Under the pieces are notes generated by a model. It had not been told where the DNA came from. It saw only the letters and a program-made list of their open reading frames with translations, and made no database searches. Positions 34,631-55,330 of a DNA stretch of 64,000 nucleotides are shown piece after piece (the first letter of the stretch is position 1; each line of letters begins with the position of its first letter). The stretch spans positions 98,667 to 162,666 of the forward strand of contig CDMY01000220.1 of the NCBI GenBank assembly GCA_001179505.1. The letters are read 5' to 3'. The translations under genes were made by a program, and so were the position numbers. This DNA is from Vitrella brassicaformis CCMP3155 (taxonomy: Eukaryota; Protista; Chromerida).

Positions 34631-37189
34631 TTGTCAGGGCTGCTTGAGAGGGGCGGTTTCACTGTCGTCTCCCTCGCGCGTGAGTTCGTCGGCGATGTCT
34701 TCGTCTGTGTCGAGGTGCGGGTTGTAGTCCGGCACAACCAGAGAGCTCCGCCGGGGGTCCGTCTTGACCGTGGCTATCTTGGGGCGCTTCTCAAAGAAGG
34801 CCAGAATGATGCCGAACACCACAGGGATACAGCCAATGGCTGCCCCAAACACTGTCCAGGTGGAGTTGCACTGGATTATTTCGGGAGACATAGGCAGAGA
34901 AATTATGACTGGCAAACAGTCCCTTTGTCTTCCTTCCCACCCACAAATTCCTATCTACCTTGTGGCCGCGGCAGAAGTCAGCACCGGGCTTCTTGTTCTT
35001 GTCGAGGAAATGCGCCACGAAACGCTGATAGAGACACAAGAGCCATTTCGTCCAATAAACAGACACAAACAGACACATATTGTCCTCAGGAGTATGCACC
35101 GTAAAGAACATATTGGAGGGTATTCTGATAGGCAGATGAAGCACACAGGAGGGACAGAGGGCGTCATTCCCTACATTGCCCGTGTGCAACAAGCCAGCCT
35201 GTCTTTTGATTCACTGTGTGGAGTAGGCGATGGAGCTGATGAAGCCGAACTGTCGGACGTCGAAGTTGTTGCGGACGTAGGCAGGTGTTGCGGCGTTGCT
35301 GCAGGGGGAGAGACGCACACACATACGCACATGACACAGTGAGAGGGAGAGAGAGAGAGACGCACATAGGCAGAGATGCACACACAGAGAGGGGAAGGGG
35401 TGTCTGTAGTGTGGGGGGGTGAAGTACTACCATGCCGCGTAGGCTATTCCCATGCATACGACCATAGGCCACACGAATGCCTCCGCCAGCAGCGCCAGGC
35501 CCAGCTGACCGATGACAAAGAACGACAGGGCGATGGAAATGAAGAGACATCGACCCATGAAGGGCTCCAGGACGTCGGAAAGGATGCCGCCGCCTAGGCG
35601 ACCAACCACCTACCAGAACACACAATGCCATACCACACAACCAACATCAACGAAATGCCAGCCAATGAGTCGGTTGGCTGACCTCCGAGATGATGTAGAT
35701 TTGCTGAGCCATGTCGGGGCTATAGGCAATTTCCCCATGTCCCGTATTGTAGGTCGCCACCACCGTCTTGAGAGCCGCGCCGAAGGCCATGCCTATGGAG
35801 GTGGATGCATCCATCGAGCAACAGGAAGGACAGAGGCCATCCAGGCTCGCTCTCTTCCTCCTCTCTCTGTCTGTCTGTCTGTCTATGTGTCTGTGTGTGT
35901 GTGTGTGTGTGTGTGCGTGCGTGTGTCTGCATACCTGTCCTATGCCGAGAAGGTAAACGGCGAGGGGGAAGTATGCTTTGAGCTGTCCGAATGTCTGCCA
36001 CAGCGGCTCGGGCGGGGCCGTTGCCAAAGTGGTCTTGCGGCGCTGACCCGCCTCACGCTCCAGCTGAGCGGGACTTTCAGCCTTCTTGGCCTGCGCGTAC
36101 CGATTGCTGCATTCACACATATACACGTAACACGTGTCGAGTACGAGGATTCTTTCTATGCCACTACTAGAGGATGGGCAGGAGGATGGTGAAGATTGTT
36201 GAGCCGACGGCGACGGCAATTGTCCACATCCATACATAGCCCGCCACATGCTTAGCCAATTCATTTCGCTTTGCGAGGATCGCGTCGGCACCCGCACCCT
36301 GGTCCTTGAGGTCCGCGATCTCGTCTGCGATAGTATGGGCCTTGCCGCCGTAGAAGACTTGCCAAAGGGTCGTCATCCTGAGAGACACAGGACAGACAGG
36401 CCCAAGGGCAAAGATTACAGCCGCATGCACAAACATTGATACATACGTGATGGCGCCGATGGAGTAGGTGGCCAGCAAAACGCCGCAGACGACGCCAGCG
36501 AGGTTTGCAGGGCACGCCTTGCTGATGCACATACATATACACATATGAGGGGTGTGTGGGTGAATGTTCGCATGTGGATGTCCCTCTCTCTCACCTGATG
36601 GTCCATACGGCTCCGAAGATGAGCCCTAGGCCGCCGTTGATGTCAAGGAGTTCAAAGAAGCCGTGGACCCACGGGGAGACGCCGGTGGGGATGAATATGG
36701 CCTTGAGTAGGAACCCCGACACACACACCACCGTGCCAAACAGCAGTATGCCAAATGTGCCCAACTTGTCGTATATGAGTCCTGTTCACAGGCAATTGGA
36801 TACATGTCACGGCAGGCGACACACACACGCACAAAGAGAGAGAGACACACAAAGAGAGAAATCTTTTGCACATCGCAAAGTCTTCTTTGCCATAAATCGT
36901 GCAGAGAGACCGTGGTGAACGATCAGAAGGCCCAGTCCGCCCACCAGCCACACGTTTCCGCTCTCACCGTCCGACCAGTCCTTGGCCCGCTTCCAGTGAT
37001 TCTTGATGTTCGAGTATATCTTTGGAGACTGCATGGCATTGCCATGCCAGACACACACACCTGTCATTGCAAAGCGACTTTATATGGGTCTGACATGCGT
37101 ACGTTGGCGATGAGGGCTGAGACCATGCCTGTTGCCATCATGGCGAACAGCAGCCCGCGGCCGCCGGACGAGGCAGATGCTGTCGCCAT
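34631..37189 (-). CDS. Major facilitator superfamily transporter (nodulin-like/Mch1-like)
   Basis: About 12 hydrophobic segments with motif-A-like GLIYDKLG and GRLGGGILSD, a Cys-containing loop before the last TM, and an acidic cytosolic tail ending ETAPLKQP*. Confidence 0.75.
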
Positions 37190-37316
37190 CGTGCGACGGG
37201 ATTGAACAGCAAAGCAAGAACAGAGGACAGCGGCTGGCCTTTAGCACTTCTCAGAACAACAGAGGCAAGTCGTTTGCAGTGAATTTCGGCTTCTGCAGCA
37301 GCAGCGGTTTCCGTTT

Positions 37317-37332
37317 GCGAGCTATAGCTCGC
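37317..37332. promoter_or_regulatory. Perfect 16-bp palindrome GCGAGCTATAGCTCGC in the MFS/RETSAT divergent intergenic region
   Basis: Seen directly; differs from the 14679 palindrome only in the central two bases. Role is inferred. Confidence 0.5.
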
Positions 37333-37448
37333 GACGAGGGGGAAAGGTGAGCACAAAGGGCGTACAGTGGGTAGGTAGCGAATGCTTTGATTGTTGCTTA
37401 CCCTTAACCACCACCACCGATGATACAAGCGAGCACGTACGCGTGACG

Positions 37449-38616
37449 ATGAAGATGAAGAACGAGATCTGCCGGTTGCTGCCGCTTTTCATCTATCTCG
37501 CCAACGTTCCACGTGACGATGCCAGATCCAACAGCTTTGTCCGCCCAGCCGCCCCTGACCATCTCAATCAACGCTCTGCTGCGCAACGGAGACTGCGTCG
37601 GCTGCTGCCGCCGGTCACATCAATGGTTGTTGCCCCGCCGCCTCCAATGCCGCCTAGAGAGACCACCCGGAAGGAGGCGGCAGATTCCAGTGGAACAATA
37701 ACGCATCCCGAGTACATCAAGGCCAGCCAAGACCCTGCACGCAACGTGTATGACAGGTCAAAGATACCCGCTGATGTGGACTTCATTATTGTGGGCTCGG
37801 GTGTGGGCGGGCTGTGGCTGGCTGCCGCCTTGTCCAAGCTGAAGGGCTACAAGTGTGTGGTGCTGGAGCAACACTACATGGCCGGTGGCCTTTGTCACGT
37901 GGTGAGTACATACCAGCGGCATAGGGACACACACACACACACACACTTTTGCCGCCCATCCCTCTTGTCTGGCTGTGTGCTCACGGCTACGTACGTAGTT
38001 CACTCACAAGGGCTACGAGTTCATACCAGGTACAACCCTACACACGATCAATTCCTGCGTGCGCGCCCTGCCGTGTGTCGTTCCTGCGTCATTTCTCACT
38101 TATGCGTGGTTCAGGTGTGCATTACATTGCCAATAAGGAGGTGTGTGGTGGTCTTCTTGAGCTCGTGTCGGACCCATCTACCCCAGTGGAGTGGCAGCTG
38201 CAGGGCGACGCCACCACGGCCGACAGGCGTGACGAGGAGGCATACCGCGCACACCACGGCGATGTGCTCGCCATGGATGTCGCCGGGGGCCATGCCGGCA
38301 CCGGGGCTGCATGCTCACACGAGGTCGTCATCGGGGACCTTCCCAAAATGAGGTGGGGCCCATCCCACACAAAGAAACGGCACACGCGGAGGACTGATAT
38401 TTATTCAGTGTGTTCGTCTGTGTGTGTGTGTGTACGCATGTGTGTGCAGCATCCGTGGGGGCAAGAGTGCTGTCATCGATGAGCTGGTACGTGTGTTCCC
38501 CAATGAGCGCGAGGCCATCACGAAGTGGATTGACCTCGTCGACAGGGTCAAGTGGCTGGTACGGCACTCAACAAAGCACACAAATGCCGTCACACATAAC
38601 GTAATGTCTGTTCGCG

Positions 38617-38648
<32 letters not shown>

Positions 38649-40776
38649 CATTCTGCTTGGTCAGCCTGGCATATTCATGCAGTCGAAAGGCATGCCAAGG
38701 TGGTTCCAGGTCAACAACACACACGACAAAGAAGCCTCCTACTCACCCTGGTCGTCGTCATGCGGGCTGTTCCGTTCATGCGTGTGCAGCCGATATGGGT
38801 GGCGCTGCTGTGCGGCCAATACCTCAAGTACGCCGGAGCGACAGCAGACAAGGTGAGCGTTCAGCCTCATGCACGAATCAGTGTGGTTGAAGATCTCCGT
38901 ATGTGCAGGTATTCAACGACATCACAGACAACCCGCAGCTGGCCACCGTGCTGTCGGCCTTTGCCGGCGACCTGGGAGAGGTCCGACACACGCGTCACGT
39001 CTTTCTCCTCTGTGAGGCGCTTGTGTCCCCGGCATGTTTCAGAACTTGCGTGAGGGTTCGTTCATCATGCAGTCGGCTGTCATCGGACACATCATGGAGG
39101 GCTGCTGGTAAGTGAAGAGGCCACATAGCCACACGCGTATGTCGTATCTATGACACTTGTGGTAGGTATCCGCGTGGCGGTCCCCCCCAGCTGACGCGCA
39201 CAGTCATCCCCACCATCACCAAGGCAGGCGGAGGCGTTTTTGTCAGCGCCAAAGTCGACGAGATCCTAGTCGAACACGGTGCGGTGCGCACGGCCGCACA
39301 CCGAGAAAAACATACGTACCAAACGAATATACTGCCGCGGCTCTACGCCTCGTTTCCATGCAGGTGTGGCCACGGGGGTCAGGTTAGCCAATGGGGATGT
39401 CCTCAAGGCGTCCAAAGGTGTGGTGAGCGCTGTGGGCCTGCGGCCGACCTTCGACAAGCTCTTGAGCCGTGATGTGGTGAGGCGGTATCTGAAGAAGGAG
39501 GCGGCTCGAGTGGACCGGTACTCTGAGGGCGCCATCAGTCACGTGTACGCCTTTGTGGCCCTGAAGGGGTCGGCTGAGGAGCTGGGGCTCAAGAGCTCAT
39601 CACTCTACTATATACCTTGGAACACATCCCAGGTGGGCAGCCGGGCTGGGCAGTCCCATCTGCCGGTGCACGTGTGTCTGTCTGTCTGTCTGTATGTCTT
39701 TCTGTGTGCAGCCGATGGAAGCATCAAGCATTCAGGACCACTACCGATCCACCCTGCTCGACCCTTCAGTGGAGGACGTGTCCGCAGGAATGCGTGAGCA
39801 CTGCACACACACCGACCACAAGAGGCCAAGCCAGCCAGTCAGTCATCTTCTCTCCCTTATTGTCCGCCTGCCTTGTGTGGGCACAGTCTTTCCCACCGCG
39901 AAGGACCCCGACTACTCTGAGAAGAAGCACCCGGGCCGCAGTGTGTGCATCATGTTCTCGGAGGCCATACCAGAGGAGTTCGAACACCTGAAAGACGGTA
40001 CGAAGCACGAGGGTGGTGTGTGCGAAGCACGCTGTGTGTGCAGATGTTCTATGTTGTGTCGTGGTGTGTGTCAGACGTGGGCGGTGTGGAGAGCAAGCTG
40101 CTGAGCGAAGAGTACAGCGGTGTGAAGAAGGTGATAGAGCGGAAACTCATCAACGCACTGCTGCACAACTTCCCACACCTCAAAGGTACCTACCACACGA
40201 CACCTGCCAACACTCCATCGCATGGCCGAGCTCAGGCGTGTTCGTTCATTTCCGTGTGTGTGTGCAGATCACATCGAGTTTGTTGAGGTGGGAACACCCA
40301 TGACGGCCTATCGTTTCCTGAGGAGATTCGACTCGCTCGGTCGGCGTGCATTCCTGCGGCACACACACATGCCGCCTGTTTGTATCGCTGTGTTGGTTGA
40401 CCGGTGCGCGTGTGTCTGTAGGTTTGCGCCACACCCCCGCCCGCATGACCGACATGGATTTGCGGCCCGACTGTTCCGTCCGCAACCTCTACTTCTCAGG
40501 ACAAGACATCGCTTTCGCCGGATGGGCTGGTGCGTCTCACCACACCATACCAGAAATACACACACACACACACAGGCATCTCATCTGCACGTTCCTCCCT
40601 CTGTCTTGCCTGTGTGGTTACACACAGGTGCGTTGACAGGGGCCATGATAGCGGCCACGCGCATCCTGGGCTACACCCCCTTGGACCTCATTCGCGGCAA
40701 GGACCTCGTGACCGATTTGGGAGGGGCGGAGCTCATGAAGGTCATGGCCAAGAAGGCCGGCATCAAAACCGTCTGA
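37449..40776 (+). CDS. RETSAT: All-trans-retinol 13,14-reductase (RETSAT)/carotenoid desaturase-isomerase family FAD oxidoreductase
   Basis: DFIIVGSGVGGL, VVLEQHYMAGGLCH, GVHYI, YPRGG, AKVDEILVE, VFPTAKDP, EVGTPMT, NLYFSGQDI...GALTGAMIAA. N-terminal extension resembles a bipartite plastid leader. Confidence 0.85.
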
Positions 40777-42168
40777 GATGCAGAATGGAGTCAAGTGCGT
40801 GAGTGCGGGAAAAAACAAGAGGCGAAGACAAGAGAAGCTGCGAGTGGAGAAGTAGAGCGGCTTTTTTCAGTGTGAGAGCGATGCTCGTTTATTGGTCGGT
40901 GCCCGTGTGAGCGTGTGTGAGGTTTCTCGGTGTGGTGCTGGGATTCGGATCTGTTGGGTCGCGAGAGGCCGTCGGTGCTTCATTTAGCGTTGAGGTATAT
41001 ATATGGACATACACATGAAAGTAGTATAGGTCTCTTGAGTGCGATGTGATGTCATGGTTTGCGATGGATGGATGGATGCCGTTTGCGTGAACTTGTCAGC
41101 TGACACGGAGCCCACAACGGCGTCATCTCGCCGGTCAGCTGGGCAGCGTCTCAGCCTTCAATTTCACGCCCTGACGGCATGCATCACCACACCAGCACAT
41201 GATGACCGGGCAGACAGACATGGATGTGATGTATGCGTTCTGTACAAAGCTGGAGCCTCTCACTCACACACATATGCTCCCTCCCCAGCATACCATACCC
41301 ACACCGCAGTCTACACACCAACGGACAGACAGACAGACTGACGAGGGGGGCGAAGAATGAAAGACCCAAGGGATATCTAGGCAGCTAGGCAGGTATGTAC
41401 CTCCAGACAGGCAGGCTGGTAGGCAGGCTGGTAGGCAGCAGTATACACATAGCTAGCGGCGGGGATGCATGGCACCCACCATGAAGCTCCATCGCTCAAA
41501 ACGTCCTAACACCTAGGTGCGTAAGTCAGCTGTGTGGAAGCAACGTCACATTGCTAGATGGATGGATGGATGCAGTGACCAGGTCGTCGCAGCCCACCCC
41601 GGCCAGCAACATCACCACCATCGTCAGGCAATGGATGGATTCCATGTAGCCCGCTCACGTGATGGTTGCATTCACGTGTGGGCCACAGTGAATCCCCATT
41701 ACCGAACGATGAAGATGTATGCTGTTGCCAGGGCAAGAAAGGAAAAGTCTCTCCCTCCCTCCCTCGCTCAACCAACCAACCGCCCACGCCCACACCACAC
41801 TCAGCATACATATGGCTATGACAGAAAAAGGGAGGCGGGGAGACGGCACCACACAGATTGTAGCTATGCAGCTAGGCAGCTAGGAAGACAGGCAGGAGTA
41901 TACACAAGAGGTGGGGCGGCGAGTGGGGGGGCATACACGGCACCCGTCCGCCATATCAAGGCCGATCGATCGAAACGTCTTAAAGGCTAAAGGCAGCACT
42001 TAGTAAGTCCTCTCGAAGGTATCTCAACCGTACCGTACCCTCTCAACCGTGGCCACATGCAAGTATATACAACACACAGATGTGCATAAAGACAGACAGA
42101 CAGACAGACACGTTTGTATACACACCACAACCACCCCTCTCTCTCTCTCTCTCTCTCTCTCCAATCTC

Positions 42169-43719
42169 TCACGTCCTCCCCTTTGCATATGTCTGAATAA
42201 TCGACTGGTATGGCGGCACGCTCCCACCGCCCCTCCCGTGCACACACGACACACCCACACGATGGCCAGCAGGGGGCCGCCCGGCTGGTGGAGGTGGGGG
42301 CGGGGGAGGTGGGGGCGGAGCCGCCGACGGGTGGTGCACGTGGTCCACCTGTACGAGTGGTGGCTGTGGTTGGCTGCTGCTCTTGAAGAGGGCGTCCAGC
42401 CGCATGTGCACTTCCTTGGCAGGCCGCTTGGGGGCGATGTGGTAGTCCCTCATGAGCTGCGCCAGGGGGCTCACGTACTGCCCGCCCGCCACGCCAGCAG
42501 CCCTGGCGAAGTGCGCCGCCTCCAGGGGTGCCTGGTTGTGCCACTTCCACACAGAGTCGCTCCAGTCAGCAGTGGTCAGAGGATGGCCCATGTGGGTGTG
42601 GCCACAGTCGTCCAGGCCAGCGGTCTTGAGTGTGTGTGAGGTTGGGGCGGGGGTGCTGGTGGTGGTGGTGGTGGGGAATGCGGGTGGGGGTATGAATGTT
42701 GCGGTGGGGTGGTGGTGTGTGAGGACGGCCCAGAGCATCAGCAGCTTGGTCGGGCAATGCGCCAACACGTAGGCGGCATGCTCCGCAGACACCTGACCAG
42801 GATCTGATCACACACAGGGTTGTCATTCTGTTGTCTTTTTCTCTGTTTTTCTCACCGGGTGTGTGTCCATGATTGGTCCAGATGTCGCTCCACAGCTTCT
42901 CTATCTTGTCGATGGTCTCACGCCCAACACTCTCCTGCAGCCAGACCAGACCAGAGACATCCATTTCACACATGTATTCACTTGTCTGATTGAGTTTTTC
43001 CCCCACACACAGGTACCTACCTGCGTGGCGTCGAGTATAAGCTGTCCGCATCCCTTGAGGAACCGCACGGTGTCGCTCAGTGTCCACAGCGACGGATGAC
43101 GGGCAGCCTGATCGTGCACGACACACCAACAGCCATACACGCCTGGTCTGCGTGTGTTGGGTGCTATCTATCTGGTGCAGACCTGCGCACCTCTGTGGCT
43201 GTGGGTCGGCATGTGGGGTCGGGATTGGTGAGCATACAGAAGAAGTCCTTCAGCAGCGGACGGTCGTCAAACTGACACACACACAAGCCACAAGACAGAC
43301 AAGACAAGGCACCACACGCAATGTCGGAACACACAGACATCGGTCTCTCTCCCTCTCTGTCTGTGTGTGTGTGTGTGACCTCTTTCATCGCGGGTTTTGT
43401 GCCGCTAGCGATGCGATCTGCGAGCATCTGTTGGCCCGAGTCCGAGTGCGACGGGCCGTAGGGATGCACCGCAGCCATGAGGTAGTACAGACTCACACCT
43501 AAGGAGAACACACACACCAATGTCCGGCTATACGCACACCTGCCCCCTTCACCCCGCCCGCCGACCCACCAGTGCTCCATATGTCGGATGTGCGCAGCAG
43601 TGAGAGGACGTACCCCGTCCAGGTGCCGCCCGCACACCCACCGCACGCCTCACTGCAGTGCGGCCCGTTGCCGCCACGACCATTGCTGTCGTGCCACCCG
43701 CTAGACTTGAGGTGACCCT

Positions 43720-43755
<36 letters not shown>

Positions 43756-45494
43756 GTCCACTCACATGTGGGGGGCCGTTGTCTGTCTCTCCCTCCCTCG
43801 TGGACGTACGGCGGGGTTGTTGAGGTAGTGGTGCACTTCGGGTGAGTAGAAGATCTGCATGCCCAGAGGGGGCAGCTCCACACCCACACCCTTGCCGTGG
43901 CTGCTCTTGTTGCTGCTGCTGTTGTTGTTGTTCCTGTTGATGGCGTGCCCCATCAGCTGCTGGAATGACGACGGTGACGACGATGGTGCAGCCCCGGTAG
44001 AAGTCGGTGGCGGTGGCGGGTGGGGCGGGGGGGAGGGAACGGGCGTGGGGGCTGGAGACACGAGGAGGGAACAGAGAAATAGAGAAGTAGAGAAATAGAG
44101 ATGTTGGTGTGTTGTTGACTGCGCATTGTGGCTGCGTACCAGTAGCAGATGAGAGTGGCGGGTACTGTGTGTGTGAGGGAGGGGTGGAGGGACGCGTCTT
44201 GGTGTAGCTGTAGGGCTCCTGGTTGGGGGTGGCGGTGACTCCCTGCTGCTGCTGCCGCTGCTGCTGCTGCTGCTGGTGTTGCTGTTGTTTGACTGTGCGG
44301 TTCCTGGCCTTCTTGTGTTTGTTGGTGCACTTGTGGAGGGTGCTGCCCCGCTGCTGGCCGGTGCTGGTCAGCAACTCGGCCGGGCGGAGGGCGATGCGAG
44401 AAATGAAATCACCCAGCTGCACCACACACACACACACACGGACAGAGAGAGAGAGGCATGGCCCCATACATCCAAGGTGAGATGCGGCTGTGTTGGGCGA
44501 TTGCCGACTGACCATGACGTGCACGCGTCTGTGGCTCTTGGTGGTGGCGGTGCTCTTGTTGTTGTATTTGTTGGTGTCTTGTATCTTGACGAATATGTTG
44601 TCGGGCCGTACGGCGAGGTGCGTGACCTGCCGCTGGTGCAGCTCCGCCAACGCATGCAGCACACCACCCACCAACTCACGACCTACACAACACACACCAA
44701 CACAACACAACACAACACAGCACCCATGACATGAACCACCAGCAGAAGAAAAGCACCAAGCGTCTCCCGCCCTGATCTGGTCACTCACCTTCGGCAGAGA
44801 ACTGTCCGTGTTTGTCGAACCACTGCGGCAGTGGGAACGCGTAGAAGAGCAGCTGCTGGAACGACATCCACTCACGGCAGTCGAGCTCCACCCCGCCACA
44901 CCCAAGCCCCATATGCGTCAGGGGTGTCAGCTTGCCCTGCGGCGGAGGGACGAGAGCCTCACTGGCGGCCGCCTGGGCGAATACGGCCTGCAGACCCCAC
45001 CGGCCGTTGCGACGGAGGGACGCCGCAGCGTCCTCCTGCACACCACACCGTAGCCATGTCTGTCTGTGGGGGTGAGTGCAGCGGGGGCGTGTGTGGATGG
45101 TCTTGTCTTACGGCGATGGGTACGGTGGAGCAGGGCGAGCAGACGAGTGGCATGGGGTCACTCTGTAGCTTCCAGAGGTCGTTGGCGAGGCACTGCACAT
45201 CCTCCTCACGGTACGCATAAAGGAGGGTCTGCAAACACACACGCCCATGCATTCTTATGGTGCATATGTGTGTGTGTGTGTGTGTGTGTACTGCGTCTCT
45301 CTGAGGTGTGTGTTTCTTGTCACCTTGAGCACTCCAGCGACGTCCTTGCCGTTCACCTTCAGCACAACCTGACGCACCTGCACACACACACGAAAGATGG
45401 ATACACATACATCGCAGCATCAGATCTCGCCACATAGATCTCGCCACATGCACGATTCTCTCGCTTGTGCCTTGCTCCCTGTGTGTGCGTGGCC

Positions 45495-45525
<31 letters not shown>

Positions 45526-45775
45526 GCGCACCTCAGCAATAGCATCGCCGTCGGGCTCACACGGCTCACACACACGGTGCACAATGTGCGGAAGGCGCGG
45601 CATAGTGAACAGGGCAATGCCAGCAATGAACACAAAGGCGCTGCCTTTGCCCGCCTGTCCTGTCTGCGAGCCGCGGGGCGAAGTGGGAAAGAAGCGCGCA
45701 CGAAGAGGAGGAGGGAAAGGGCCTGATTTCCAGTGTCACTCTGCTCATCTTAGCTGCCTCTCCCTCCTCGCTCAT
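42169..45775 (-). CDS. Protein-kinase-fold protein, probably a pseudokinase, with an IRE1/RNase L-like C-terminal extension
   Basis: LAELHQRQVTHLAVRPDNIFV (HRD replaced by HLA), LGDFI (DFG variant), FYSPE, VFSLGVSLYYLM..HPYG, DPTCRPTA, then HPSLWTLSDTVRFL. PolyQ inserts lie between subdomains. Start at 45775 or 45748. Confidence 0.6.
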
Positions 45776-45817
45776 CGATCTGCCATTTATCGCATAGATC
45801 TGATCTGATCTGTGGCC

Positions 45818-46805
45818 ATGGCGTGGAGGTTGGTTGTGGCGGCGGTGTTGGCCTCGTTGGGATGGGTGTGCGGGTCAGCTGGTGGCTCTGCTTTCGTGCC
45901 CTCATGGTCCTTGAGGCAACCCATGCGCTCACTCAGACAGGTACAGTACCAATGGTTCGTTTATTGCACTGATACGACCACGATGGCAGGCAGATCAGGG
46001 AGATCAGCTGCTTGACGGTTTGTTGTGCATCATCTGCTGTGTGCCTGTGTGGCCATCAGTCGCGGCCGGTGCACACCGAGCAGTACCTGTTTGGCGGTGC
46101 CGGCACACCAGCTCCCCCACCAAGTGGGCAACACAGACGAGAGTGTGTCGATGCCTATTGGTTGCTGTGCGTGTCTGTTCCGTCCACTCAGCTCCTGCTG
46201 GCGGTGCGGGCGGCGGCCTCATGCAGAACTTCGAGGCCATCAAGAAGACACAGGAGCTCTTCCAAAAGATGAAGGTCAGCACGGAGCGGAACAACAGACT
46301 CATAGGTCGACAGCTGGCATTCATTGGTGTGTCGTCAGGATTTGAACGAGGAGATGCTCAAGACGGAGATAGAGGGCCGTTCGGACGACGTCGACAAGGA
46401 GGTCAAGATCGTCTACAACGGCAACGGCACACCGCTGCGCGCAGAGGTCAGCGAGGGCGCCGCATCGCTCGACAAAGACCAGCTCGAAGAGGTACGCCAC
46501 CGGACCAAATCACACACACGGATATACACAGGTACTGAATGCCGTGTGTGTGTGTGTGTGTGTGTGTGATTTGGTCAGGCCTTGACAACGGCTCTGAAGG
46601 ACGGTTTTCAGAAGGCCGGAGAGACCAGGCTGCAACGGATAGCCAAGCTATACGAAGGTGCGTATGGGTGGACGGACAGACAGATGAGGCGGGCAGCCTG
46701 TGTGGACGTGTGTATCCTGTCCTGCTGTGTGTGTGTGTGTGTGCAGAGATGGGATTGCCGGCAGAGGCCATGCAGAAGATGATGGGTCAAGGGATGGGCC
46801 TCTAG
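45818..46805 (+). CDS. Plastid-targeted YbaB/EbfC family protein (STIC2-like)
   Basis: Signal peptide MAWRLVVAAVLASLGWVCG, then GSAFVPS transit start. Mature part GGLMQNFEAIKKTQELFQKMKDLNEEMLKTEIEGRS..VKIVYNGNGTPLRAEV..LEEALTTALKD fits YbaB/EbfC. Confidence 0.8.
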
Positions 46806-47314
46806 TGTGCGTGCATGCATCAGACTGACAGGGTGTGACTTTGCCGCCATTAGGGAAGGGACTGACGATACAGTAATGCTCCTGTGAGGACGCATTGGAG
46901 GTGTGCTGCCGTGTTGTGTGTATTTATACATGTGGAAGTGGCGTGTGCATGGGAGTTTTCAACGTGCCTGGGTTGATGTGTGAATGTGTGGCCAGACGGA
47001 CCATGTTGCTGTCAATGAAGCGAGAGCATCTCTGAAGACGTTGGTGCATCGATGTGGACATTTCAAAAGACACAGAGATGGAAGACAGTAACAGCTGGAC
47101 GGATGCACAACACGCAATGCAGCAGAGTAGCCCGAGATTCGTATGAACACATGTAGCAGGCCCCATATGACGTGGATTATGTGTATATACATGTAGCATA
47201 CAGATGCGATGCGATGCACCATGCATGTATATATACATGTACACTGTATATATATACGCAAGCAGTGTGGGCGGCTGCTGTGGCACACCACACCACACCG
47301 ACCGATACACACAG

Positions 47315-50300
47315 ACGGCATCCTGAAGGCCAGGGTCAGGACAGCAGCAGTGAGGAAGACCTCGACAAGGGTGGACGTGGCACGCAGCGAGCCGGAGCCT
47401 GTGTTCGTGGAGGCTTATGTCCTCGAGCCGCACAAACTGGCCTTCTTGTCCGAGGCCGGCAAGCCGCTGCCCGATCCTGAAAACGACAGTGATCTGGTGC
47501 AGACGCCCACCGTCGACAAGGGGCCTGTCACACGATTCCCAGCGGCAGAATGCAGTCTAGAGCTCCCATTTAAGAGGAAGGTGAGAAGGGACAGCGCATG
47601 AGCGAGAAAGAGCCTGAAAGGTATGTTTGTTGTGAATGCGCATACAGGAGGACATGATTCTGCTAAGAGTTGTCGACAGCAGCCTGACCGATTACCCTGC
47701 GCGTCTGGCTGAAGCGGTGCTGAGTCTGTCATCTCGTCGCCAGCCAACAAGTGAGCCACTACGCATTCCGTTGTCCCTTAATGCAGCCATCCTGCCAACC
47801 GCGACTATGCAATTGAATTACCATGTTGAGGATGATGAGAGCGGCGGGAGGACGGCCACAATCCAGATTCAGTCGGCTCAGAATATCCCAGTCACAGCCA
47901 ATAAGGCAATGAATGTCTATGTTGAGGCCTACCTCACCGAGCAGCTCTCTGGCAGCCAAGCTCAGCCATTCCCTCAGGAGGAAGAAGCACAAGTGCAAAA
48001 AAGGGTTGTTGCCGACCTCTTTGGACGAGTCAAGAAGGCTTTCTTCGGCATGTTTTCTCGCGAGACGGGGCCACAGGCTCCACCAGGACCACCGCTCGAC
48101 CGCCACGTCCCGTCCTACGCAATCACGGCAGCAGCGGATGTGGTCGAGGTGTCACCGGTGGATGAGCTGTCTTTCCAGTTCACCCAGACGGACATCGGCA
48201 AGAACGTCATCAAAGTCTCAGGTCCGAGGGATTTCGGTGCCCTTGTGTTGAGGGTCGGCTGGCTGCCCAAAGATGGGAGGAGAAGTGAAGGGTCGTTGCT
48301 GGGAGAGGTGGCACTGCCGATCAAGGACGCCCTCAGCAAACCTGAGTTCCGCAACGCGCAGGGCTACCGCTTGAAGAAATACGGCAGGGCTACGCAAAAA
48401 CCAATGTTTGTCCAATTCTTCGGCGAAACAAGCTACGTCTACCCACCGGAAGTGCAGGAGGCCCTGGACGGAGCCGGCGACGATGCCAAAGAGATCTTGA
48501 TAGTCCTCGCAGAGGAGGCGAGCAGACGCAGTGGGACGTATTTTGAAGAAACCAGGGCCGAGCCCAAACCGGCCGAGCGTGAGCAGGTCTTGGTTATGGA
48601 GAGACAGCAGGGGCGCTCTGTGCGGAAAGACGCGCTAGCACAGGCCATCCAGGGGGTCATGCTCTCTGAACATGCGGAGCCTGGCGAGGTGGAGCCGTTG
48701 CCGGAGGCGAGGGACCAGATGATGCAGGATATCATCAGACAAATCCGTGAGGAGGAGGAAGAGCTGTCCACAGAATCGATCAGCTTCACCCTGGACAAGG
48801 CTCTGGTCATGCTGCTCGACGAAGAAGAGTCAATGAAACAGTAAGACATCCCGGAAAAGTTGTTTGCTTACAATTGTATGTTTTTGCACATGCCTGTCTC
48901 AGGGACGCAGCCTTAGAGGCCTTGTTCTTGGATGCAAAAACGTCACGTGAGGGCGTGCGTGGAGTTTTTGTGGCGATTGATGTGACTGACTTTGGCTTAG
49001 TCTTGCGGAGAGGGTCGAATCAGGTCCAAATCGACTGCGTCCGCATTTGTGGAGTTGAATGGGCAGATGAGCCAATTGGCGAAGGTGAAGAGTCGGCTGA
49101 AAGCAGAAAATCTCAGAGATGGTATGGAAGACTCGCCAGGGGGTTCGAGACCGAGCATTTGTCTGGTGAGTCTGAAGCTGCCGTCAACTTGGTCGTTCGC
49201 GTCGACATCAGCCTGACGGTCCATTCGTCAACGAAGCTTCTCAAGGAAGCCATAGAGCAACGAGCGGCCCAGATGGAAGCCCCTGATCTTGAGGACCGGC
49301 TGAACGAGGTCCAAGTCCACCTTTTCTTGCCGAGAGAGGTCGCTGAGAGGTTCACTGAGACCATCAGGAGGGGCAGGCGTGCCTGGCAGATACGCCTATG
49401 GCACGTCGGTGAGGAGGAAAGCCGCCATGAGGAGGCAGAGGGTGACGAGACGCGACAAGCACAAGCAGCGGTGGACGAAGCAGCGGTCGAACTGGAAGAA
49501 ATCGAGGAGGTGAGAACACCACACCAACAAGACATGTGTATATTACAAGCTCGTGCAGGAAGAGGAGCCGTCTCACATATCTGTCGCTGCGGAATCGGCC
49601 ATTCACGGTCCTTCCGAAACCTCGAAGGCCGAGGCCGTTACATTTGAGAACGAAATCTATTCCTTCAGCAGCCTCGGAGCATCCTTTACGGCCTCAGTGA
49701 TTGATGTGGACTCTTCGGGACTGACGGTGTTGAAGAGGGCTCAAGTCGACGAAGAAATGGGAACCACTGACGAAGGGGGGCCTGCAAGCATCGGCATTCT
49801 TTTCGATGGTCTGGTGCAAGCACAGCTGCTCTCCTTCACAAGCGATGAGCACTTTCAGGAGACACTTGTACAAGAGAAGGTCCCCATCTCAATTGCACGC
49901 ACCTTGCAGCCCCCGTCTCCCTACCTGCTGACCCTGGCCCGCTGTGCGACAGCCACTGAGCCCTCAGTCTACATCATTGTCTCCACGTCGACTGCGGCAG
50001 TGGCGGAGGAGATTCTCCAAACAATAGAAGCATTCAGACGGTGATCAAGTATAGATGCACTTCGACGACCCTTTTCTCAGTGTCTTCCTGTCTGATATGC
50101 CCAGAAGTCACTTTCAAGCGCGACAAAAGCCGGAGAGTGCACCACCGGCCCCTTTGGAGCAGCCAGCGCCGGTCGCACCCGATTCGGCTGCAGAGAAGAA
50201 GTTCGAGAGACAGGACACAAGTGCACTCCCACAGGAGGAGCAGCAGATCCTCAGGCAAGTGGAGTTCCTTTCCTGGCCAAACACAAAGGTCGCGTCCAGT

Positions 50301-52015
50301 GTCTTCATGAGGAACCACCCGCTCGCAAAAGTGCTGCAGCCAAACGCAATGCTCACATCCATGCAGAGGTCAGCAGTGACAGCGGCCAGAACAGATGACG
50401 GCTTTGAGAACCTTTCTTTGCGTCGTGCCTCTCAGGTTTCTATTACTTGCATGTGCCACGTTGGGCACCGCATTTGTCGGCGCTCTGTTCTTCACGAGCA
50501 CGGCCACCGCTCTGCAGTGCGTACCTGTCGCTGCAAGCAACGTGACGGACAGCATAGCCGCCAACGACACGGACGTGCCCTCTCCGGCACCCAGCCTTCC
50601 AAAGGCGTCGTTCAGCATCCCGACTGATTTGCTCTACACGACGGATGACCAGTGGATAAAGGTCTTTGGGGACCTTGAAAGTGACCCAGAGGTGCTGCCT
50701 TTTATGTTTTCACACGGATGTCTGATCCGCTTCACCTGAACGATTGCTCTAGGTTTCGGCTACGGTGGGGCTGACCGACTACAGGCAATCAGTACTGGGA
50801 GACGTCATCTTTGTCGGCCAGCCCGTCGTCGGCATCGAGTTCAAACCGGTCGGTACACTTGTGTCTCATTTGCCGAAGGAAAGTGCTTTTTGTTCTTGCA
50901 ATCAGGGTGGTCTGGCCAGTGAGATCGAGACAATGACTCGGCTGATTCAGCTCAAGGCGCCCATTGGCGGAACAGTGTCTGAAACTAATAGGCGACTGGA
51001 CGACGCCGCATATATGATCAATGACAGTAAGAGTCCCGATCCGATGCACCAGGGCAGAGACACAAATCTCCTCCTTTGACAAAAATGACAGGCCCTTACA
51101 CTGAGGGATGGCTGTACAATGTCTCTGTCTGGTCGCTGAGCGAGCGGCAAAGGCTGCGATCGTCCTTCATGAGTACAGCCACTTAGCGGTCTCTCTCCCA
51201 CCAGTTGCTCACCAGGTGTCTGTCTCCCCTTCAGATGCGATATCGTACAATGCCTCGCTGCAGCAAAAGATCCTGGAGCAGCCTGCTGAAGAGGAGGAGG
51301 AAGCAGCGGTGCCCTGCGTCTATGAGGACCCCAACGAGGCAACATTTCAGATAAACTGGCGGCAGGTCTCGCCTGAAAGAAGAAAGAAAGAGGAGAATTC
51401 CCACAAGGAATGTCATTTTGTGGCTGCCGTCAGGTTTGGGTGGCGATATTCTCAATCGTCTTCTCTGTCCCCGTCCCCATGCTGCTCAAACAGCTGTTTG
51501 CCATGCGTGTGGTGCATCAGCCGATGCATCTGCAAGACAAAAAGAAACTCATCCGCCAATGGCGCAGAAAAGAGAAAGTTGGCGTAGTTCTCGGCTTCTG
51601 CTACCTATTCTGGTGCCTTTTCTTCCTCTTGATGTTCTGCGTAAGCCACATAAGAACAAGCCATAGGCACACTGCATTCTGCGACTGATTGTGCTCTGCT
51701 CGATTGCAGGTCACGACATCGAAGCTGCAAGACGTCTATGACTACATTATTACGACGACGCTGAGCTTTGCGCAGAAGATGATAGTCCGCCCGTTCTTCT
51801 TCGTCCTTGGCTTCTTCGGCCTAATCAAGATATCGACAATCGTCGACCACTTCGATGGGCTGCTGTCTGCCTGCCCCTCTTTCCTGGACTGGACCTTCCT
51901 GTTTGCAAATTCTCCTGAGGAGCTGATTGAGTCGTCGAAGGCCCTAGGGAGGCGGCTGGACGTCGACGAATTATCGGAGATAGGCGGCATACAAGACTTA
52001 GACATGTTCACGTAG
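47315..52015 (+). CDS. Large membrane protein: C2-like N-terminal domains, polycystin-1-like TM block, and an embedded glycine-cleavage H-protein-like domain (5' end upstream, unresolved)
   Basis: Long ORFs 47636-48844, 48874-49647 and 49553-50044 joined by GT-AG introns. HPLAKVLQPNAMLTSMQR|FLLLACATLGTAFVGALFF resembles the polycystin H..T..QR-TM motif. A GcvH-like segment lies at about 50605-51250, followed by three further TM segments to 52015. Confidence 0.7.
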
Positions 52016-52613
52016 CCAAGGCGACAGTCACTTGGCTCGTTGTGACTTTCCCCTTCATATTGTACTTAGACTTGATCTGTGTCTCTTTGCATTTATGCGG
52101 CCCCGCATGAGGACACGCGAGTGCACAAAAAGAGTGTCTCCAGACAGACATGAATGTGGTCATTGCAGTCCTTACAGACTCACCGCCATGCCATCACGAA
52201 TATCATCACACGCGTACACCACACGACCCACCCATCCTGCCTCACAATTAAAATATGTGGTGTGTAACCTCCAAGTCTCTTTCTCAGCAACATCTGCACG
52301 CCATCGCATCATTGACTCGACAACCACCGTACGCGCATGCGGCAGTCAATTGGCCAGCAAAACAAGCACATAGCTAATTAGCCTCACTGCTTGCTTCGTC
52401 GCTTGAGAGTGAGAGCATACCTGTTGACGCCTGACAGGACTATTCCCCCGTCATTCACACAGATACACACGCATCCGGCCCGCCATGTGGCTCTCGTCTC
52501 AGCCCCCCCAGCATGGACAAACGAACAACAGGCCAGTTGTGGACAGACTATGAAGGCAAGAAAGTTGTGTACGAACCGAAAAAATACAGCGAATGCGAGG
52601 GCGTCGGTCGCAG

Positions 52614-54499: not shown

Positions 54500-55330
54500 C
54501 TATGTCCCCCCACACCTTCGAGACCGTCGCAGCGAAAGCCTCCGAAACCACCCCCAGCGCTTTCTTCGCCTGCCCGCGTCCTCAAGGAACTGGCATGCTG
54601 TGCGTTCGAACCGGGAAAGGTCCGTGCGACAGAATGGGCAGAGCGAGGACGTCTCGCGACATTTTGCCGAGCAGTCACCGCACACGTTGGTGAGGCAGCA
54701 CGGGTACGGTGTGCGGACCAGCTGGGAGCGCGGCGACACGTCACTGAAAGCGTTCGAGCATATCGCACCTGTTATAAGAAACGATAAACATGCAGCTTGT
54801 GCAGTGNNNNNNNNNNNNNNNNNNNNNNNNNNNNNNNNNNNNNNNNNNNNNNNNNNNNNNNNNNNNNNNNNNNNNNNNNNNNNNNNNNNNNNNNNNNNNN
54901 NNNNNNNNNNNNNNNNNNNNNNNNNNNNNNNNNNNNNNNNNNNNNNNNNNNNNNNNNNNNNNNNNNNNNNNNNNNNNNNNNNNNNNNNNNNNNNNNNNNN
55001 NNNNNNNNNNNNNNNNNNNNNNNNNNNNNNNNNNNNNNNNNNNNNNNNNNNNNNNNNNNNNNNNNNNNNNNNNNNNNNNNNNNNNNNNNNNNNNNNNNNN
55101 NNNNNNATGATTAGGCCCTTCCGCAGTGCCCAGCCCGATGGCCACGACGAGGGTCCGAGAGGAGACCAGTTGATTATCACCATCAGGGCCAGCTGTCACA
55201 TAAACACACACCACACGGTGTCATCTGCGTGTCGGTCAGAGGCAAGGGAAGCGTACACACGCACCTGAATGGCCAGACGAGCAAATGCTCCCACGAGGTA
55301 GAACACGAGCAGCAGGAATGACATCACCAT
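54500..55330 (-). CDS. Small protein with N-terminal hydrophobic segment and C-terminal RING-like zinc finger (spans assembly gap)
   Basis: MVMSFLLLVFYLVGAFARLAIQ|LALMVIINW...[gap]...(C)AIC-x17-PCCLTNVCGDC-x10-CPFCR. The first Cys depends on a phase-1 splice from sequence hidden in the gap. Confidence 0.55.
54807..55106. other. Assembly gap (300 N)
   Basis: Run of N. Confidence 1.

Follow-up and report, generated by a model that had tools for sequence, protein, structure and literature searches.

The glycine cleavage system's H-protein (GcvH/GCSH; PF01597, TIGR00527) is, to our knowledge, among the most conserved of the small carrier proteins, and in nearly all cases it stands by itself as a protein of organelles or of the cytosol. 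Here we describe a gene, contained in a 64,000-nucleotide stretch of DNA from the chromerid alga Vitrella brassicaformis (hereafter the window, meaning this whole stretch), that encodes a multi-pass membrane protein in which an H-protein fold with its lipoyl lysine replaced occupies the loop between two helices. Whereas GcvH is a soluble protein of ~130 residues, the Vitrella domain forms an inter-helix loop in a protein that has 1316 residues or more, and is predicted to be non-cytosolic and N-glycosylated. The two have in common a complete fold, the same sequence family, and a similarly acidic isoelectric point (pI), with the signatures G(I/L)TDY.Q, LGD..FV..P, AP..G.V.E.N, and N..PY..GW all kept in the Vitrella domain; they differ in the threonine that stands for the lipoyl lysine, and in a 7-residue insertion in an early hairpin.

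H-protein-derived domains are also employed outside glycine cleavage in Abitram/Simiate and in bacterial GcvH-L, the latter of which retains the lipoyl lysine. In contrast to the Vitrella protein, these are small, soluble proteins of the cytosol or nucleus, neither of which is membrane-embedded. Simiate is derived from the H protein (PMC3859600). Outside the cytoplasm, the lipoyl-like domains of the bacterial periplasmic adaptor proteins HlyD, EmrA, and CusB provide a precedent for a lysine-less hybrid-motif β-sandwich (lipoyl or biotinyl type) serving as a structural module; however, these share only the ~75-residue hybrid motif with the Vitrella domain, and not the full H-protein fold, and they differ in organism, architecture, and ancestry. 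With respect to membrane architecture, polycystins and TRPML channels carry a TOP or luminal domain in the loop between their first two helices. The Vitrella protein resembles polycystin-1/PKDREJ in that a large, sequon-rich domain lies in a predicted outward loop between the first two of four helices. Directly upstream in contig L001 of strain CCMP3155 (GCA_001179505.1), REJ, GPS, and one transmembrane (TM) helix are encoded, which would give five helices if joined. The protein differs from polycystin-1/PKDREJ in that the loop domain is an H-protein fold instead of TOP, with no Pfam signal for PKD_channel, PLAT, or REJ and no pore helices.

Sequence family, fold, and lipoyl site of the GcvH-like domain

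A first-pass annotation, made from the letters of the window, had proposed a complete H-protein match from end to end, which is borne out by Pfam GCV_H (PF01597), Foldseek, and VIA-align. The segment window:50753-51025 (i.e., exons 7 and 8 together with an in-frame 57-nt intron) matches Pfam GCV_H with E=4e-8 and 33.6 bits (cut-off 22.2) and the NCBIfam GcvH models at E ~1e-9, the 37 bits obtained with the latter standing against an equivalog cut-off of ~116 bits for a query that is only a 91-residue fragment. This segment also matches 13 distinct solved H-protein chain sequences, the best being a mycobacterial H-protein (E=7e-9). For the deposited allele of the protein (P0001; see below), the Pfam GCV_H match reaches 71.5 bits (E=7.6e-20; cut-off 22.2) and covers profile positions 2-116 of 122; this allele, used for the Pfam and AlphaFold runs, shows 1.9% divergence from the window in exon bases, with some segments skipped by its gene model. 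Against our own profile of 22 canonical H-proteins, the spliced window protein reaches 95.8 bits (aa 977-1112), a score that is somewhat circular since those 22 were picked as matches to this domain. Identity to canonical H-proteins is 26-38%. Of the 15 columns that are invariant or nearly so in a 23-row alignment, the domain keeps 12; the three losses are the lipoyl lysine (now threonine), the serine that precedes it by two residues (likewise threonine), and the TDYAQ alanine. The domain is acidic, with a pI of 4.3 as compared to a canonical median of 4.2. The 57-nt in-frame intron (50849-50905) was considered as coding sequence and rejected; RNA removes it, and the H-protein alignment is gap-free without it.

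The AlphaFold model, built for P0001:881-1281 on alignment A1, gives the same fold for the domain at high confidence, as the first-pass annotation had anticipated: the predicted local distance difference test (pLDDT) score is 91-98 over the GcvH-like domain, and only 55-80 in the membrane part of the same model. The best 21 Foldseek matches to this model are all solved H-proteins (TM-score by target, 0.84-0.92), followed by GcvH-L as match 22 (0.80-0.92 over the first 22). Using VIA-align, the model superimposes on the pea H-protein 1dxm with Z 22.6 and a root-mean-square deviation of 1.1 Å over 131 of 131 residues; GcvH-L (PDB 5a35) follows with Z 15.8, and the lipoyl-like domains of periplasmic adaptors yield partial matches (Z 5.0-6.6). 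By all three approaches, the complete H-protein fold, comprising the hybrid-motif sandwich and the C-terminal helix, is present in the model.

Replacement of the lipoyl lysine is observed directly, as had been claimed from the letters: ESVK reads ETMT in both the window and P0001, and threonine occupies the lysine position in every alignment, in a column that is lysine in at least 90% of the sequences of the 23-row alignment. The sole nearby lysine sits six positions downstream, away from the hairpin tip. With threonine in place of the lipoyl lysine, the domain can therefore neither carry lipoate nor work in glycine cleavage. Alignment and model together describe a GcvH-like domain with a predicted fold that is intact and a cofactor site that is gone.

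Gene structure and expression

Logan contigs of four public runs were aligned to window 46800-52300, with X1 and X2 being spliced RNA, and X3 and X6 unspliced DNA. The X1 contigs contain 11 joints, every one of them GT..AG, which remove introns of 49-69 nt and define 12 exons; when joined, these form a single frame that stays open for at least 1316 codons, all splice sites having been checked in the window sequence. A single X1 contig of 1626 nt spans 49385-51503 with seven introns removed, and bears TM1, the whole GcvH-like domain, and TM2 on one molecule; the domain is therefore not a separate gene. The sequence that links the domain to its membrane segments likewise has neither a start nor a stop codon, and another X1 contig covers 51710-52300, i.e., the last exon and sequence beyond the stop. 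Correctly spliced mRNA of the gene is seen in two RNA runs. These data establish both gene structure and expression directly, and confirm the TM-GcvH-TM continuity that the first-pass annotation had assumed, with membrane segments on both sides of the domain in one frame.

The splice junctions first proposed from the letters agree with X1 RNA in all cases but one: the donor after QWIKV lies at 50691, and not at 50661. The corrected donor adds FGDLESDPE to an early hairpin, such that the protein reads ...QWIKVFGDLESDPEVSATVG..., and it is from these added residues that the 7-residue insertion relative to canonical H-proteins arises. GC content is 50-60% in this eukaryotic DNA, and the introns of the gene are very short.

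Membrane segments and predicted topology

Hydropathy yields four membrane segments in total, the first two of which enclose the GcvH-like domain in a loop of ~205 residues. Where TM1 and TM2 border on this loop, their flanks contain 0 and 1 Lys/Arg, respectively, as against 9 in the 28 residues of the TM2-TM3 loop. Five N-glycosylation sequons (NVT, NDT, NDS, NVS, and NAS) lie in the TM1-TM2 loop, where 1.33 would be expected upon shuffling of the loop's own residues (P=0.004), and only one is found in the other 1110 residues of the protein (i.e., 5 of 6 are in the loop). The loop has just two cysteines, at 946 and 1130, and these flank the domain, one on each side. Because the positive-inside pattern and the sequon enrichment both point the same way, we infer, as a plausible reading of the sequence, that the GcvH-like loop faces outward (luminal or extracellular) and is N-glycosylated. 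The first-pass annotation had suggested such a location from two TM segments and four sequons; hydropathy upholds the flanking segments and the sequons number five, with the location itself retaining the status of a prediction.

For the N-terminal 918 residues, no Pfam or NCBIfam family match was obtained. Sequence patterns and language-model look-alikes hint at two C2-type β-sandwiches in this part (score 0.89), which we take as a lead only; the single-sequence AlphaFold model of the putative C2 module was unusable (pLDDT 38), and language-model look-alikes for residues 881-1281 gave nothing usable.

Relatives, deposition, and origin

The protein is that deposited as CEM11189.1 / UniProt A0A0G4FE04 (P0001, 1281 aa; "unnamed protein product") from Vitrella brassicaformis CCMP3155, for which PF01597 is already on record automatically. 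Searched exhaustively with the 91-residue window:50753-51025, a set of 1.84 billion representatives yielded one long protein, namely P0001, from the same gene; the remaining matches were ordinary H-proteins of 87-268 aa, plus one spurious repeat protein (P0020). Word-index protein searches with full P0001, the TM2-TM4 region, and the isolated domain found only P0001 itself or nothing, a scan of JGI metagenomes found no relative, and an ESM Atlas shape search gave ordinary H-proteins only, with no membrane-embedded form. The first-pass annotation had called the architecture undescribed. None of the literature searched describes a membrane protein with a full H-protein fold built into it, although the protein itself was already deposited with PF01597; per the literature and databases searched, the architecture is not previously described and is found only in Vitrella.

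The ten nearest and ten further canonical matches are a mixture of bacterial, metagenomic, and eukaryotic sequences (the latter from Hemimastix, Monosiga, and Meloidogyne), and therefore no donor lineage can be named. No canonical Vitrella GcvH occurs among these ten nearest and ten further matches. A Vitrella gcvH, Vbra_5481.t1, is listed together with the P, T, and L proteins in a supplementary table, and served with its Chromera orthologue as a mitochondrial reference (PMC6668581). This entry is a candidate for the separate canonical GcvH for which the first-pass annotation had proposed a check.

Upstream context and the polycystin question

The first-pass annotation had also termed the membrane protein "polycystin-like", a label that finds no polycystin family match. 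Pfam PKD_channel, PLAT, and REJ give no match in this protein (window open reading frames [ORFs] and P0001), and the membrane part comprises four helices, without pore helices, for which Foldseek and VIA-align return only generic helical matches (model pLDDT 55-80). Support for the label is circumstantial and comes solely from the upstream context in L001, where a gene model with REJ on record lies directly upstream on the same strand (REJ being weak on single ORFs) and where, 3' of this model, L001:5452-5751 encodes the GPS motif CSCSHLTSFA followed by a TM helix. The first exon of P0001 is a 7-residue stub within a longer open frame. The window contains neither REJ nor GPS, nor the initial 150 residues of P0001. 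Joined to the four helices of this protein, the helix after GPS would raise the total to five, a parity that would leave the GcvH loop on the outside. That the GcvH-bearing protein and REJ-GPS constitute one receptor (REJ-GPS-...-GcvH) is a tentative proposal, to which we give somewhat less than an even chance. The further proposal, that the H-protein fold is the outer-face loop module of a channel-less, polycystin-1-like REJ-GPS five-helix receptor, where it would dock the cleaved ectodomain, the stalk, or an external ligand, is appreciably more doubtful.

The annotated end of the REJ gene model at L001:5330-5751 looks wrong (…YWDEE / SWSTAGC… / LQCSCSHLTSFA); the GPS region and helix read there only with a 52-nt phase-0 intron and a 1-nt frameshift near L001:5355.

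Interpretation and competing explanations

We consider it probable (roughly 0.7) that the gene encodes an expressed Vitrella multi-pass membrane protein in which a lysine-less H-protein fold, copied from gcvH, is kept as a non-catalytic module of the outer face. Most likely, a canonical gcvH gene was copied long ago, with the copy now containing four spliceosomal introns. The copy would have lost the lipoyl lysine and retained its fold-determining residues, and the domain would probably have been kept as an acidic binding or scaffolding module on the outer face, without catalytic function. The resulting architecture would run from a long N-terminal part, probably cytosolic, through TM1 into the ~205-residue loop, which may be N-glycosylated and perhaps stapled by its two flanking cysteines, and on to three more helices. 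We further infer a binding role, as well as a receptor kinship, whereby the protein may supply the membrane half of a channel-less receptor of the polycystin-1-like REJ-GPS type; the domain would then be able to contact the ectodomain.

Several points weigh against this interpretation. The outward topology comes from simple sequence rules and is predicted. In the window, the frame is still open at its 5' end, and the join at the left end of homology with L001 lacks contig backing. With unchanged splicing, two of the indels detailed below (at 49942 and 50560), shared by L001, X3, and X6, would disrupt the frame over TM1. Only four allele substitutions, three of them non-synonymous, fall inside the domain, which is too few to demonstrate that the domain itself is constrained; nor can cross-species conservation be used, as no relative outside Vitrella was found in the databases searched. 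With respect to the receptor, the REJ-GPS-TM frame in L001 belongs to a gene model of its own and stops ~250 nt before the annotated start of P0001. An intron of 147 nt with GT..AG ends could bridge the two frames, but it is 1 of 19 arithmetically possible single-intron paths from the GPS-TM exon to the second exon of P0001, and therefore proves nothing.

The alleles bear on whether the gene is instead decaying or dispensable, i.e., a lineage-specific accident in the course of being lost, with a domain that has no maintained role. Relative to the window, exons of L001 contain frameshifting indels of -5 at 48282, +5 at 49806, -1 at 49942, and +4 at 50560, of which the -1 and +4 are confirmed in both DNA runs (X3 and X6), the +5 in X6 as well, and the -5 in neither. 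The public gene model of P0001 evades these indels, remaining open by skipping segments of 22, ~70, and 34 residues; the protein is an orphan, and in the domain the ratio of non-synonymous to synonymous substitution rates (dN/dS) is ~1, as computed from just four changes. However, the window frame is open for 1316 codons across 11 introns, with correctly spliced mRNA in two RNA runs; dN/dS relative to the CCMP3155 allele is 0.32 for the whole comparison, with 0.20-0.27 in just those segments where that allele is frameshifted; exons of window and L001 diverge by 1.9% as compared to 4.2% for introns; and the fold-determining residues are intact despite divergence to ~30% identity with canonical H-proteins. 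We hold decay to be improbable. X3, X6, and L001 have mosaic variant patterns, suggestive of recombination between haplotypes. Slightly less probable again is that the protein is a membrane-anchored H-protein mimic of the mitochondrion or plastid, i.e., a decoy or regulator that docks lipoylation or glycine-cleavage enzymes. The acidic surface would suit such a mimic, and so would the retention of most of the conserved H-protein residues, which have a further part in recognizing partners in canonical proteins; moonlighting is also reported for the GcvH of Mycoplasma. A non-carrier relative of the H-protein is also known in Simiate/Abitram (PMC3859600). Such a role accords poorly with the resemblance of the 918 residues before TM1 to cytosolic C2-type modules (a lead only), with a sequon enrichment that is confined to the loop, and with the neighbour in L001, which is part of a surface-type REJ-GPS receptor.

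The ends of the locus raise the question of an artefact, whereby mis-assembly or read-through of two genes would have brought in the GcvH segment from a separate soluble protein. Homology between window and L001 is confined to 47325-52247 (~4.9 kb at 97.4% identity; L001:6578-11518), with unrelated sequence on both flanks, so that the window departs from L001 at either end. On its right flank, the window has the support of X1 RNA, which stems from its own strain. No contig backs the left junction (~47300), and loose contig ends lie at 47219 and 47298 in all four runs; this join is either a mis-join or a strain-specific rearrangement, and the shared block as a whole suggests that a gene segment was transposed or duplicated, or that sequence was mis-joined. 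Nonetheless, the domain lies well supported within the block: the 1626-nt RNA contig holds TM1, domain, and TM2 in one frame, L001, from an independent assembly, and two DNA runs share the colinear 4.9 kb, and start or stop codons that might separate the domain from its membrane segments are lacking. An artefactual origin is accordingly very improbable, and far more so than decay or mimicry.

If kept as an outer-face module, the domain would clearly exemplify how the fold of a metabolic carrier can be put to new use in a structural or binding role, in a loop that probably faces outward. Should the REJ-GPS link be true, it would also provide a handle on loop-domain swapping in the evolution of polycystin-type receptors; and should the receptor reading be true, this would be the first H-protein fold to serve as an extracellular receptor domain, i.e., a carrier turned pseudo-carrier sensor. 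The architecture is restricted to one genus and its function is putative, making it an instructive curiosity as opposed to a new system.

Features of the locus

Table 1. Positions of the GcvH-bearing gene and its parts in the window.
Feature	Position	Strand	Support and remarks
Left end of homology with L001	47299..47325	.	No contig backs join; inside exon of CCMP3155 gene; blastn of L001 aligns 47325-52219 only
Transcribed, spliced gene part	47374..52015	+	X1 RNA contigs; stop TAG 52013-52015; 5' end of frame still open
Exons 1-4	47374-47580, 47648-48840, 48903-49509, 49559-50040	+	X1 RNA joints
Exons 5-8	50105-50368, 50436-50691, 50753-50848, 50906-51026	+	X1 RNA joints
Exons 9-12	51092-51172, 51235-51365, 51434-51640, 51710-52015	+	X1 RNA joints
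N-terminal 918 residues (exons 1-5 and first base of exon 6), presumed cytosolic	47374..50436	+	No hydrophobic segment in hydropathy scan
TM1, aa 919-940	50437..50502	+	Kyte-Doolittle peak 2.21; helix in AlphaFold model
Linker between TM1 and domain, with Cys946 and sequons NVT, NDT	50503..50616	+	Sequence; CCAA insertion site (after 50560) of L001, X3, X6
GcvH-like domain, aa 979-1107	50617..51248	+	Pfam GCV_H, PDB sequence matches, own profile, AlphaFold, Foldseek, VIA-align
Introns inside GcvH-like domain (exons 6-10)	50692-50752, 50849-50905, 51027-51091, 51173-51234	+	X1 RNA
Thr codon ACT at lipoyl-lysine position (ESVK to ETMT)	50936..50938	+	All alignments
Linker between domain and TM2, with sequon NAS, acidic run, and Cys1130; includes intron 51366-51433	51249..51433	+	Sequence, X1 RNA
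TM2, aa 1147-1168	51434..51499	+	Hydropathy, AlphaFold helix, X1 contig 49385-51503
Basic TM2-TM3 loop, predicted cytosolic	51500..51583	+	9 Lys/Arg in 28 residues
TM3, aa 1197-1216, across intron 51641-51709	51584..51712	+	Hydropathy, X1 RNA
TM4, aa 1239-1258	51779..51838	+	Hydropathy
Acidic C-terminal tail and stop codon	51839..52015	+	Sequence

Neighbouring features in the window

Just upstream of the GcvH-bearing gene, a small intron-containing gene at window 46220-46802 (+) encodes a protein that resembles the nucleoid-associated YbaB/EbfC (Pfam YbaB_DNA_bd E=0.005 for one exon piece, below cut-off), with an RNA contig depth of ~194 as compared to ~13 for the GcvH-bearing gene. Further upstream, window 37347-40776 (+) contains a multi-exon FAD/NAD-binding oxidoreductase gene (Pfam NAD_binding_8 E=2e-7 on the first ORF), and window 43718-44905 (-) an ORF with the kinase-like motif HLAVRPDNIFV, broken by long glutamine runs from CAG repeats, for which the raw ORF has no significant Pfam match. 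A run of N at window ~54800-55110 is an assembly gap, and the window therefore comes from a scaffolded assembly. Many CA/GT microsatellites, translated as CVCVCV or HTHTHT, are scattered over window 35700-47300, in introns and intergenic sequence as well.

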